Assembly (NCBI GenBank): GCA_950097015.1
Contig: CATNEN010000035.1
Span: 1,178,001 to 1,242,000, forward strand
Length of the DNA stretch: 64,000 bases
From: Macrostomum hystrix
Taxonomy: Eukaryota > Animalia > Platyhelminthes
Reading direction: 5' to 3'
This document shows positions 58,836-64,000 of this stretch, piece after piece (positions within the stretch are counted from its first letter, which is position 1; each line of letters begins with the position of its first letter). The position numbers were made by a program, and so were the translations under genes. The notes beneath the pieces are model-generated. The model saw only the letters and a program-made list of their open reading frames with translations. It was not told the origin of the DNA and searched no databases.

Positions 58836-61800
58836 TTATTTTGACGTGGTAGGGAGTAGTCCAGCCTCTCTGGCCAGGAAGTGGAAGTACGAGTCCTGGT
58901 TGGCCAGCAGCTCTCGAGGAGGCGCGAACTCGCGGATCCGACCGCTATCCAGCACCATCACTCGGTCGGAGTCCATGATGGTGGCCAGGCGGTGGGCGAT
59001 GATGAGCACGGTGCTGTCGGCGAACTGCTGCCTCACGGTGGCCATGATGAGGGAGTCCGTCTCCAGGTCGACGGCGGCCGTGGCCTCATCCAGCACGAGG
59101 AGCCGACTGCGCCGCATCAGCGCTCTGGCCAGACAGACGAGCTGGCGCTGTCCCACTGACAGGTTGGTGCCGCCCTCTCCGCACTCGTGTGCCAGTCCCG
59201 CTGACAGACCGCGAGCCCAGCTGGACAGGTGGGCCGCATCCAGAGCAGCCCACAGCTCCTCGTCTGTGCGCTGGTCGAACGGGTCCAGGTTCGACCTCAG
59301 ACTGCCGCTGAACACAGTCGGCTCCTGCGGCAGGATGGTCAGAGCTGAGCGCAGCGAGTGCAGGCCCAGTCGGTCGATTCGCACTCCGTCCACCTCGATG
59401 TGACCAAAGGCGGACTCGATCAGACGGAACAGGGCCAGTGTGAGACTGCTCTTTCCCGCTCCAGTGCGTCCCACGATGCCGACCTTGTGACCCGGCTCCA
59501 GACACACGCTGATGCCCTGCAGCACCAGGTCTAGCCCGGCTCGGTACCGGGTGGCATAGTTGCAGAACTCGACTCGGCCTCTGGAGGGCCACCCATCGGG
59601 AGGCAGCGAGTCTGTTGTCCACGGCGCCTCAGTTTCCAAGTTCGAGTACTCATTCAGCCGCTCAATGGCTACGGAGTTAGTTTCTAGTTCAGTGAGCTGG
59701 CGCACCATCCAGTTCAGTGAGGTTGATATCTCTAGTGCGTACGACACCGACAGGCCGACGAGACCGGGCGTCAGCGACTCGCGACCCAGAACGGCGAGCA
59801 AAGCAGCGAGCACCACTGCTGCACTGCCGAGCAAAAGCAGTCGAATTCCCAGCCATCGGTTGGATGCCATTTTAAGAAAGTAGAACCTGCAATCGGGTCG
59901 ATATCTTCGTTTTATACTCCTATTGTTTTTTAATTCAATACTAATCACAATCAGGTAACTGATATCATTGGGAAATCAAGAGCTTCAGGTCTTGCAAGAA
60001 CTTCAAGTAAATACGAGGGGTGTTTCAAAAGTTTCCGGACTGACGTCACCATTTTGAGTTGAAATGGCCAAATCACTTGAAATTTGATATGCAATTGCAA
60101 TAAGATTATTTTTATTATGTCCTAAAATTTCAGCGCAATCGGATTAACTGATCAAAAGTTGTAATGAATTTTGCATTAAACATCAAAAACAACAAATACG
60201 ATTTTTGGATTTCAGTTTCAAGCGATCACTCCTAATCACTGTCAGAGTCACTGATACCGTCGGCTGTGTCGCGAGGCTGACAGCTTGCGCGCTCTACGTA
60301 CTCGCCTTCGATGGAGATGCACTTCTTGTAGCGCTCAATTAGCGCGTCGAAGCCAGCCTCCCAGAATTCAGCCTTCAGCTGACTAAGCGACTGATTGGTG
60401 GCATTGATGACTTCGTCACGAGTTGAGAAGATCTGACCACGCAGAGGCATCTTCATCTTACCGAATAAATGAAAGTCAGCAATGGCGAGGTCAGGACTGT
60501 AGGCAGGATGATTTAGCAGGCGAAAGCCGAGCTCCTCCACCTTCGCCTTTGTGCTAGCGGCAGCATGAGGTCGCGCATTGTCCCAAAGAATAAACGGTTT
60601 CTGACGCATTATGCGGCGCTTGCTCAAAACTGCACTTCGCAGGCGATTCAGCTGATCCATTACGTAATCTGAGTTGATAGTCTGACCTTGTGGAACATAG
60701 TCAACCAGCAGCACTCCGCGAGCATCGAACCACACAGTGCACATCACATTTCGAGTCCAGGATGACTTCATTGCCTTCTGATGAGGATGGCGCCCCTTGG
60801 GTCCCCAGTGCATTGTCTGCTGCTTGGTTAACGGCTGGAACATGGGCAGTACAGTCTCATCCATCGTGATGGTCAGCTCCTTGAACTTGGTGTCTCCAAG
60901 CTCGTCCCACACTGCCCGATTCTCCAGCGCGCAACGCACTCTTGCCTTCTTGTGCTCTTCTGTAAGGTCACGTGGCACCCACTTGGCGCAGATCTTCGAC
61001 CATCCTTCGCGTTTCAGAATGCGCCAGACAGAAGCGTAGGGTATGTCAAACTTGCTCTCTATTTCACGTAGCTTTGCCGATGGATTCTCTTCCAGGTAGG
61101 ACAGCACAGCAGCGGCTGTGCCGGCGTCCGTACTGGAGCGTGGACGGCCTGATCGTGGAGCATCAGCAACACTAGTCGCACCTCCAGCAGCAAGTCGGTG
61201 ATGGTCAAACACTTGCGACCGACCTAACGCGTAGTCACCGAATGCTTGGCATACCTCTGCAAACGTATGCGTCGCTGTCTTGCCTTGACGTTGACATGCA
61301 ATGATGAAGTGGCGCTGGCTGTGTTTTGACCCAAAGTCCGCGGAGTTGGTCGGTCGACTCATTTCAGAACGGTAGAGCGTAGTAGGCTGCTAAAAATCTT
61401 TTTCGTTTTGATGCGGCTTTAAGCTGCTAAAGCCGCATCGCAGTTGTCTAATGTGTCTATGGCTAAAACTCATGTGTCATCGAGAGAAACTTGTAAGCTC
61501 GGTATCGATCAGTATCGATTCATTTATTCGGTAAGATGAAGATGCCTCTGCGTGGTCAGATCTTCTCAACTCGTGACGAAGTCATCAATGCCACCAATCA
61601 GTCGCTTAGTCAGCTGAAGGCTGAATTCTGGGAGGCTGGCTTCGACGCGCTAATTGAGCGCTACAAGAAGTGCATCTCCATCGAAGGCGAGTACGTAGAG
61701 CGCGCAAGCTGTCAGCCTCGCGACACAGCCGACGGTATCAGTGACTCTGACAGTGATTAGGAGTGATCGCTTGAAACTGAAATCCAAAAATCGTATTTGT

Positions 61801-64000
61801 TGTTTTTGATGTTTAATGCAAAATTCATTACAACTTTTGATCAGTTAATCCGATTGCGCTGAAATTTTAGGACATAATAAAAATAATCTTATTGCAATTG
61901 CATATCAAATTTCAAGTGATTTGGCCATTTCAACTCAAAATGGTGACGTCAGTCCGGAAACTTTTGAAACACCCCTCGTATTTTACTACTTTTCGATAAC
62001 AAACCTGGCATTGTTGTCCACTAGGCTATCCGATTTTCTTGAAAATCGTTGTTGCTGACAAAATGCTCGAATTAAAGCTGCGCCAGCAATGGATTCGCTT
62101 AAGTTCGTCAGGATTGGAGATCGGGAACTTGATTCTAAACGGCGACTCTGTCTGGAGACAGGCAAATAGAACACCTGAACTCCAGCATAGATCACAGCAA
62201 GTGGCACCACAGCGGCCAGGAAGATTGGTGTGGTATAGGAGATCACAACTAGGCAGGAGATGGTTGTCATGAAGCATTCAAGGAAGTCAATGATCACTCG
62301 TGGCAGCTCCCTGTCAATTACCTCCAAGTCCTTGCTGAATCTGTTTACAAGTCGGCCGGTCGGTGTTGAGTCAAAAAAACTCATCGGAACTCGAAACAGA
62401 CATTTCAACAAAGCATCGTGTATCCTTCGAGAGGCTTTTAACGCTGAGTAAGTGTCCGTCAATGAATAGGCAATGACGAGAATAACAACTGCGACTCCGA
62501 ATGCTCCATAGATTCCTGTATAATAGCCACTGAGCTCTCTTATATAAGCGGAATTATTAGGGTTGTTTATTATCGAGTTGTTTGAAAACACCGGATCTGA
62601 AGTCCAGGTGGCCAGCCAAACGCTGCTCGCAACTACCACTGCTGTGTAGGTGAGATGTCCTAAAAGCACCAAAATGACCAGGTGCATTCCTCGAGAGGCT
62701 ATGTAGAATAAGTAGGACTTCTTCGAGACACTTCCTGATTGGACAACTTCATCACTGGTTACCCGGCTGGTGTTCTCAGTCCTGTAGCAGAAATCAGCAA
62801 AATCAAATTCAGTTTGACGTAAGCCACAAATGCCCCAAAGTGATCAGGCATCATGGAATCGCGAGTATAAAGGATGCAAAAACGGAGCCCATAAGCTACT
62901 AAGTGATAAAACTTCTAGAACATTAATTAGTACAGTAGAACCCAGCCGCACTCATCTTAAGGATTCAGTGGGATAAAGGGAGATGCAATCGTGACTTTAT
63001 GGCAACTCAGAGCTCAAGAATGAACCCTAAATCACTGCTTCAATTCACAAACAATTCGTTCCATCATGTCTAATCGGGAAGTAACTTATTGGCTATAGAT
63101 GTGGTTTAATTTTGAGATCTCATTTTTCAATAGCACAACACACTAACCTTGATGGCTGGTGGGAAGGTGGGTTTTTCAAGTCGAACCGAGCAAGACTTTC
63201 AGAGTACTGAGTATCAGCTGAACTGTACGACGCTGAATAGGGAGGTGACGCTGCTCGTACACCCGGACTTTCACTCAGAGCTTCGTGACCAGAGCTTACG
63301 CGACTTGTGAGTCGCTGCAAAATCCGCGCCTTCTCAGCCTCCACTTCTTCGTCTTCTGCCTCATCCGGCGCAGCTTCTGAGATGTCTGCAACTGAGACGC
63401 TGGCATCGCGAGACCTGGCGGCCCGCTTCCGCTCAACGTCCTGCAGGAAGAACTCCTTGAGGAAGCTGGCAAAAGGGTCCGTCGTGATCCAGCAGATTCT
63501 CATAGCTTCCTTGCTCACTGATGCGACCTTCGTTGATAACGATGATCTCGTCCACATGAGGCAGCCAGTGGATTCCATGAGTGACCAACAGTCTGGTTTT
63601 GTTGCGTAGCAGGCCTGAGTTTCCAATTACCTGAAATAAAAATGCCGAGGCGTTTTATATTTGCTCTCGATAAATCCCAAATTATACACGGTACATAATG
63701 CAATACGAGCTAAAATTCATAAAAATTATATCAAGTATACAAAAAGAAGTCACGGTCGTTGCTTTAAAATAGAGCAGATGCCGGTTTTACATTTTTATAA
63801 GGAACTCTCACGCTATTAAATATTTTCTTGCCGACATGCGAGTCCACAGCAGCCAGAGGGTCGTCCAGCAGGTAGATGTCACTGTCCTGATACACAGCTC
63901 TGGCCAGACTGACTCTCTGCTTCTGTCCACCAGACAGGTTGATGCCGCGTTCCCCGATCTCCGTGGCGTCGCCCGCTGTCATTGTTTTTAAGTCCGTCTC
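58836..64000 (-). CDS. ABCC1: 3' part of a tandem ABCC/MRP1-like paralog (incomplete at window edge; one apparent +1 frameshift, possible pseudogene). Exons: >64000-63812, 63630-63148, 62781-62005, 59886-58836
   Basis: It has the same intron positions and phases as exons 11-14 of the 45-51 kb gene, with NBD1 LSGGQ/LLDD, TMD2 and NBD2 motifs. An extra A lies at 63471-63474, and a mariner sits in the last intron. Confidence 0.85.
60014..61978 (-). mobile_element. Mariner (DD34D) transposon, 1965 bp, with 460-bp terminal inverted repeats, inserted at TA in an ABCC intron
   Basis: TA flanks both ends (60012-60013, 61979-61980). Termini are CGAGGGGTGTTTCAAAAGTTTCCGG. Segment 60014-60473 is the reverse complement of 61519-61978. 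Confidence 0.96.
60232..61362 (-). CDS. Mariner transposase, 376 aa, open reading frame
   Basis: It has HTH regions, PRSGRP, WVPRDL and YSPDLA. The catalytic triad is ITMDET / WDNARPH / AIADFHL, with 34 residues between the second and third Asp. Confidence 0.95.
   Translation of the reverse strand: MSRPTNSADFGSKHSQRHFIIACQRQGKTATHTFAEVCQAFGDYALGRSQVFDHHRLAAGGATSVADAPRSGRPRSSTDAGTAAAVLSYLEENPSAKLREIESKFDIPYASVWRILKREGWSKICAKWVPRDLTEEHKKARVRCALENRAVWDELGDTKFKELTITMDETVLPMFQPLTKQQTMHWGPKGRHPHQKAMKSSWTRNVMCTVWFDARGVLLVDYVPQGQTINSDYVMDQLNRLRSAVLSKRRIMRQKPFILWDNARPHAAASTKAKVEELGFRLLNHPAYSPDLAIADFHLFGKMKMPLRGQIFSTRDEVINATNQSLSQLKAEFWEAGFDALIERYKKCISIEGEYVERASCQPRDTADGISDSDSD

Follow-up and report, generated by a model that had tools for sequence, protein, structure and literature searches.

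We analysed a 64,000-nt window from the genome assembly of the flatworm Macrostomum hystrix (G000; 220 Mb in 42 contigs), which contains a mariner transposon with two ends that are perfect inverted copies of each other over 460 nt. This element, together with its relatives of the same structure, is referred to here as family A; all positions without a contig or locus name are those of the window. Very probably, family A is a young, low-copy DD34D mariner in which the element's last 460 nt (including the end of the transposase gene), copied in inverted orientation, took the place of the 5' end, and which was then moved in this rearranged form by cut-and-paste transposition.

A repeat search identified inverted arms at positions 60009-60473 and 61519-61983, i.e. 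465 nt of 100% complementary sequence with a spacing of 1045 nt. The element's own share of each arm is 460 nt (Table 1), and the remaining 5 nt comprise the TA duplication plus an AAA/TTT flank, the target site being AAATA/TATTT. Read in the sense of the transposase, the element consists of (i) the 460-nt inverted copy of its 3' end, (ii) 156 nt of unique 5' untranslated region (UTR), (iii) an open reading frame (ORF) of 1131 nt, and (iv) the 3' UTR with the outer inverted terminal repeat (ITR). The 3' arm contains 2 nt of the F297 codon, 79 whole codons, the stop codon, and 218 nt of 3' UTR plus ITR, and the final 242 nt of the ORF (239 coding nt and the stop codon) lie inside it. The original prediction, made from the letters of this DNA, had described perfect 460-bp arms carrying the last ~80 codons and the 3' UTR, which agrees with the complete complementarity and the 79 2/3 codons counted here. 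It had also placed the start of the arm directly after the codon of the third catalytic Asp; this location proved right, although the exact boundary lies 1 nt past the D296 codon (GAC T/TT). Since members of the clade agree well in the last 80 residues of the protein, the sequence comparison indicates that the 3' arm is the original functional copy and the 5' arm the duplicate.

Table 1. Positions of the family A element, its parts and the surrounding intron in the 64,000-nt window.
Feature	Position	Strand	Remarks
Whole mariner element, family A	60014..61978	-	1965 bp; transposase reads on the minus strand
Left TA target-site duplication	60012..60013	.	TA on both sides in 5/5 complete-ended copies
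Right TA target-site duplication	61979..61980	.	TA on both sides in 5/5 complete-ended copies
3' arm (donor arm)	60014..60473	-	outer ITR, 3' UTR, stop codon, last 79 2/3 transposase codons
5' arm	61519..61978	-	perfect inverted copy of the 3' arm, in place of the ancestral 5' end
Outer 28-nt ITR	60014..60041, also 61951-61978	.	sole arm part conserved in sister families; presumed transposase binding site
Unique proximal 5' UTR, 156 nt	61363..61518	-	presumed remnant of the ancestral 5' UTR, likely promoter region
Transposase ORF	60232..61362	-	376 aa, open, DD34D mariner
Host ABCC-type gene intron holding the element	59887..62004	-	GT donor 62004-62003 (CAG/GT), AG acceptor 59888-59887 (ttgcag)

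Several smaller features were noted in the upstream part of the element. A perfect 13-bp stem with a 4-nt loop (61410-61439) lies in the unique 5' UTR, ~50-75 nt upstream of the start codon of the transposase; every copy has it, and it may be a regulatory or protein-binding palindrome. A direct repeat, GTATCGAT-CA-GTATCGAT (61502-61519), with an ATCGAT palindrome in each of its 8-nt units, adjoins the junction with the 5' arm. The 5' arm itself carries an ATG-initiated ORF of 74 aa on the plus strand (61536-61760), a duplicate of the transposase C-terminus that reads outward to the end of the element.

The transposase matched the Pfam profiles Transposase_1 (55.4 bits, cut-off 24; E 5.6e-15) and DDE_3 (36.3 bits, cut-off 28.6), and its match to HTH_48 (22.5 bits) was slightly below the cut-off of 24.1. 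It aligns over its full length with the Mos1 transposase (3hos; E 8e-29), and also with the SETMAR transposase domain. The catalytic triad is formed by D168, D261 and D296, the last of which is aligned with the third catalytic position of SETMAR/Mos1, and the mariner motifs WVPRDL (WVPxxL) and YSPDLAIAD (YSPDLxxxD) were both identified. Because 34 residues separate the second (WDNARPH) and the third (YSPDLAIAD) catalytic Asp, and given the catalytic domain, the triad, the TA duplication and the terminal inverted repeats (TIRs), the element can be classified from its sequence as a canonical DD34D mariner of the Tc1/mariner superfamily. With TIRs of 460 nt at 100% identity, it also has the TIR length of the long-TIR mariners (>100 bp in DD34D).

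Analysis of the whole assembly revealed three full-length copies of family A, two internally deleted copies that keep both arms (contigs C29 and C1), one truncated copy (C25), and several solo-arm fragments. One of the full-length copies (G000:C13:26601-28565) is 100% identical to the window copy, which resides in contig C35, and the other (C12:2543997-2545961) is 99.4% identical, with 12 differences. The flanks are unrelated among the copies. The unique 156-nt 5' UTR occurs at exactly six places in the genome, each time with the inverted arm attached; none of these six places holds a family A member whose 5' end is of the conventional kind. Thus, the 61518/61519 junction, for which a search for further copies with different flanks had been proposed in the original prediction, recurs at six loci on six contigs, and the normal unique 5' end that other copies might have retained was found in none of them. 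The 376-aa ORF is open in the two identical copies (C35 and C13), while the C12 copy carries W152* and four further amino-acid changes, as would be expected of neutral decay after insertion. The proposal of an autonomous foldback mariner lineage therefore holds as far as a transposing family with an open ORF in two copies is concerned; its autonomy, like the activity of the transposase, is presumed from that open frame.

Two explanations that would deprive the structure of biological meaning were considered. According to the first, chimeric long reads or hairpin artefacts created, at assembly, an inverted duplication that is absent from the animal. Inverted duplications are a known artefact of long reads, and the arms of the window copy are suspiciously perfect; against this, the identical junction lies at six separate loci with different flanks, the copies are separated by point substitutions and independent internal deletions, and mirrored arm variants segregate among them (see below). 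The same breakpoint, accompanied by TA duplications at unrelated sites, is not what an artefact is expected to produce, and we regard this explanation as extremely improbable. According to the second, the window holds a single dead rearrangement, which we rejected: five loci, which differ in their flanks and have TA duplications, carry the same unit or a deletion derivative of it that keeps the arms. Both are excluded by the occurrence of the same unit at multiple loci with a unique 5' UTR that is always joined to the arm, which supports the view, on the evidence of these copies, that the foldback-like form is that of a transposing family.

The internal deletions of the C29 and C1 copies have breakpoints 4 nt apart; they are independent, and short microhomologies are present at their junctions, which would be typical of abortive gap repair. 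A common breakpoint, which would have meant transposition after the deletion, was rejected on account of this 4-nt difference. Among the solo-arm fragments, two lie ~55 kb apart in G000:C3 (L023:1501-1900 and L024:1501-1835) and are broken at the same arm position (~249-252, with GGCT in common). Each of them adjoins a similar sequence beginning CACTGGGAAG, and their relative orientation is now inverted; they resemble the halves of a single arm into which another TIR element, with a 4-bp duplication, had inserted. A further solo arm (L022:1500-1790; G000:C5:5825288-5825573) continues on its inner side, a few bases on, into TA+CGAG, where CGAG corresponds to the initial four bases of an ITR. 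This looks like a near-total one-sided deletion resembling mariner excision footprints.

Comparison of the two arms within each copy revealed no differences in C35 and C13, one in each of C29 and C1, and four in C12. At arm position 172, both arms of C35 and C13 have A (A:T), both arms of C29 and C1 have G (G:C), and C12 is mixed; two of the three solo arms covering this position have G. At position 211, C29 alone has a change, which is present in both of its arms. Since independent complementary hits at the same position are very unlikely, this pattern indicates that sequence passes from arm to arm and that the arms evolve in concert, probably by gene conversion within the element or by recombination of one inverted arm with the other. 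For bacterial insertion sequences, recombination of the two TIRs with inversion of the core has been documented (PMC3004938), and in family A such an event would merely flip the element in place. The best explanation for the identity of the arms is that it reflects partly the youth of the family and partly copying from one arm to the other.

The same genome contains two sister families, which place this structure in context. Family B (1754 bp; 59-60% protein identity to family A) has an open 371-aa ORF in most copies. It is represented by at least 12 full copies, and twelve loci (L034:2608-4361, L028:2235-3989 and ten more, L109-L118) have TA on both sides. Family A is the rarer of the two; judged from its sequences, family B looks currently active. 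Its TIRs (201 nt, 95-97% identity) end ~33 nt short of its stop codon. The arms of family B display stable arm-specific differences and, in a few copies, patches converted to the 3'-arm state, which indicates that its duplication is older and is homogenised only occasionally. One family B copy (L027; G000:C39:17500583-17507178) is devoid of its 3' end (B positions 3-1564) and has no TIR pair, with an ORF that is mostly open. Family C comprises ~776-bp deletion derivatives, resembling miniature inverted-repeat transposable elements, of a third related mariner (L033:2787-3562; similar elements in L029, L030 and L032); their TIRs are 47-79 nt long and the C-terminal coding piece is single. TIR length is thus labile within the clade (47-79, 201 and 460 nt). 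What the three families share is restricted to the ORF and the outermost 19-28 nt; a comparison of their UTRs, by which the ancestral 5' end could be mapped, revealed no homology outside the ORF and the ITR. Families A and B have the same first 19 ITR nucleotides and differ at positions 20-28, and 27 of 28 nt match between families A and C; with such similar ends, the transposase of family A might move family C derivatives.

Beyond these families, the genome is very rich in mariners: a protein search yielded 902 first-look candidates, including many families that are 30-37% identical to family A, several of them with open frames. The closest proteins of other organisms (P0001-P0011), encoded on contigs of 1.3-2.5 kb, share 59-75% identity with the family A transposase (70-75% for the nearest). 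A metagenome scan with the clade alignment detected distant mariners only, the best being 45% identical.

The rearrangement that gave rise to family A would have exchanged its 5' end for an inverted copy of the last 460 nt (3' ITR, 3' UTR and the last ~80 codons). It is likely to have been caused either by a deletion between two copies lying head to head or by a switch of template while the gap left by excision was being repaired; both routes would lead to the same product. A deletion would extend from just past the D296 codon of one copy into the 5' UTR of its partner. An origin like that put forward for Rpmar49, a mariner of Rhodnius prolixus (PMC4678618), i.e. deletion between two copies during abortive gap repair, is the simplest. 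The rearranged unit would have retained the whole ORF and the 156 nt of proximal 5' UTR, and would subsequently have spread by ordinary mariner cut-and-paste into TA sites. Because the ORF and the outermost 19-28 nt alone are conserved and no internal ITR-like site is present, recognition by the transposase is presumably confined to the outer ITR (~28 nt common to both ends), as in other mariners, the rest of the arm being a passenger. We infer the mechanism of the rearrangement, the activity of the transposase and its sole binding to the outer ITR from these comparisons.

Some observations weigh against this scenario. Its origin left no diagnostic trace: the 61518/61519 junction has no clear microhomology (1 nt at most is possible), and the GTATCGAT repeat adjoining it could, speculatively, be filler from end-joining repair. 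Only two copies have an intact ORF, and these are identical. Moreover, given the identity of the first 19 ITR nucleotides, the family B transposase could move family A in trans.

This last point leads to the reading that family A is a real yet non-autonomous element, with a transposase that is inactive or that is not expressed following loss of the promoter-bearing 5' end, and that it is moved by family B. The numerical prevalence of family B copies with open ORFs over the two open copies of family A would be consistent with such dependence, as would the shared start of the ITRs, the non-autonomous nature of Rpmar49 as a precedent, and the 616-nt 5' UTR, composed mainly of the inverted 3' end, which is an unusual place for a promoter. 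On the other hand, the 376-aa ORF is fully open, all its catalytic and DNA-binding motifs are conserved in comparison with relatives, and every copy has kept the unique 156 nt that precede the ATG. The two families differ at ITR positions 20-28, and a mariner transposase usually acts on the ITR of its own element, which counts against trans-mobilisation. We therefore consider mobilisation by family B rather unlikely, and favour a family A that, after replacement of its 5' end, moved by means of its own presumed transposase.

The window copy is inserted in an intron of an ABCC-type gene that is read from the same (minus) strand. Of the flanking frames, the upstream one encodes an ABC_membrane exon and the downstream one an ABC_tran exon; these were searched separately, and the splice sites were placed by eye on the basis of GT..AG and the open frames. 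Once the element is subtracted, the intron would be ~151 nt long, and TA is present on both sides of the insertion, which corroborates the TA duplications within a ~150-bp ABCC intron described originally. The assembly was also searched for a paralogue of this intron and for an allele with an empty site; neither was found, as the left flank occurs there a single time.

Any RNA reading through the element, including the ABCC pre-mRNA, must contain both arms and could thus form, as judged from the sequence, a perfect 460-bp stem, for which self-silencing or A-to-I editing had been suggested in the original prediction as possible outcomes. This raises the question of whether the arms have been selected for a function, either as a built-in double-stranded RNA trigger (a perfect 460-bp hairpin limiting copy number) or as a duplication of a silencer at the end of the ORF. 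A silencer has been reported in the last 300-500 bp of the Mos1, Himar1, Hsmar1 and Mcmar1 ORFs (PMC4777549), and the segment corresponding to it is present twice in family A, once upstream of the gene; this duplication may serve as a lead only. The inevitable presence of both arms in read-through RNA, the low copy number of family A compared with family B, and the silencer in four mariner ORFs are in line with selection. However, few copies are just as much to be expected if the family is young. Arms of freely varying length occur in the clade, and conservation stops at the inner edge of the ITR; both points suit passenger DNA better than a module under selection. Selection on the arms is accordingly very unlikely in our estimation.

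An advantage of a different kind had been suggested in the original prediction, i.e. that an element with two 3' ends transposes better. According to PMC2642840 (citing Auge-Gouillou 2001), Mos1 pseudo-transposons with two 3' ITRs are the standard efficient donor. In the present case this benefit lacks support: the outer 19-28 nt are near-identical at both ends in families B and C as well, and family A has fewer copies than family B.

The internal structure of the arms separates family A from two known architectures. The repeat search revealed no direct or tandem repeats within the arms, and no second match to the terminal 16-28 nt was found inside them with up to 25% mismatches allowed. As the arms contain no internal copy of the terminal binding site, the inverted repeat/direct repeat (IR/DR) architecture was ruled out; in IR/DR Tc1-like elements (Tc3, Sleeping Beauty, Bari3) each long TIR carries a second transposase binding site. 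Assignment to the Foldback class (FB, Galileo-like) was also rejected, the arms being free of internal tandem repeats and the transposase being that of a mariner. The term "foldback" used previously is therefore loose, since neither internal tandem repeats nor second binding sites are present.

Among the closest structural parallels is Rpmar49, in which the 5' part was likewise replaced by the 3' part, including coding sequence. That element has unusually long TIRs of 221 bp, and its rearranged form was amplified by true transposition to 13 copies (PMC4678618). Family A shares with this short non-autonomous lineage the replacement by an inverted 3' end that includes coding sequence, but it has not lost its transposase ORF: the entire 376-aa frame is kept open, and the duplicated segment is 460 nt. 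A similar arrangement is known from Galileo of Drosophila willistoni (PMC4168063), where the final piece of the transposase ORF lies in the 3' TIR and, reversed, in the 5' TIR (69 bp in a nearly complete copy, >500 bp in another), a trait that was called unique to Galileo. The length of Galileo TIRs is dynamic and one TIR can pass sequence to the other (PMC4168063). Unlike family A, Galileo is a member of the P superfamily, encodes a P/THAP transposase, generates 7-bp target-site duplications, is much larger, contains tandem repeats in its TIRs, and yielded no functional copy.

Long TIRs have also been described in other Tc1/mariner elements. Mcmar1 of Meloidogyne chitwoodi, as presented in PMC8664452, is a DD34D mariner with TA duplications and perfect 355-bp ITRs. 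The Btmar lineages of Bemisia tabaci (PMC8664452) are likewise DD34D elements with TA duplications, and have TIRs of 125-459 bp; the longest-ended of them, Btmar1.15, is a defective 1.2-kb element with 459-bp TIRs that retains the second and third catalytic motifs. In full-length whitefly elements, unlike family A, TIRs of 180-200 bp flank the UTRs, and no overlap of a TIR with an intact ORF is described (PMC8664452). The comparison of family A with Mcmar1 and Btmar is by description only, and outside its own small clade the family A transposase is at most 40% identical to any protein. The aphid long-TIR (LTIR) clade (Apismar5, PMC5490172) resembles family A in having Tc1/mariner TIRs of ~460 bp, but it is of the DD40/41D type, and its elements are 2.3-2.4 kb long, so that the TIRs need not reach the ORF. 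We found no report of TIR-ORF overlap in an ORF-intact Tc1/mariner element with recent copies in the searchable literature, the coverage of which is incomplete and makes this weak evidence. An ORF-intact mariner with such an overlap thus appears to be unreported, and the structure of family A extends rearrangements already known in other transposons. A stronger view would make family A the first ORF-intact, self-mobilising mariner with a TIR grown into the transposase gene, in which ~240 coding nucleotides co-evolve with an inverted non-coding twin and the 460-bp double-stranded RNA stem of read-through transcripts triggers RNA interference or editing and, possibly together with the duplicated silencer, caps the element's own copy number. 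We consider this combination quite unlikely.

Family A, interpreted as a mariner that moved after replacement of its 5' end, provides a clean natural example of the growth of transposon ends, with intermediates persisting in one genome: the longest TIR of the clade has absorbed 80 codons of an intact transposase gene. In annotation it should be borne in mind that such elements can pass for assembly artefacts or for a pair of nested copies. If family A is autonomous, the recruitment of an ORF into TIRs would extend from the decayed Galileo and the non-autonomous Rpmar49 to a working mariner, and the element would be a natural construct for asking whether long perfect read-through hairpins restrain a DNA transposon.

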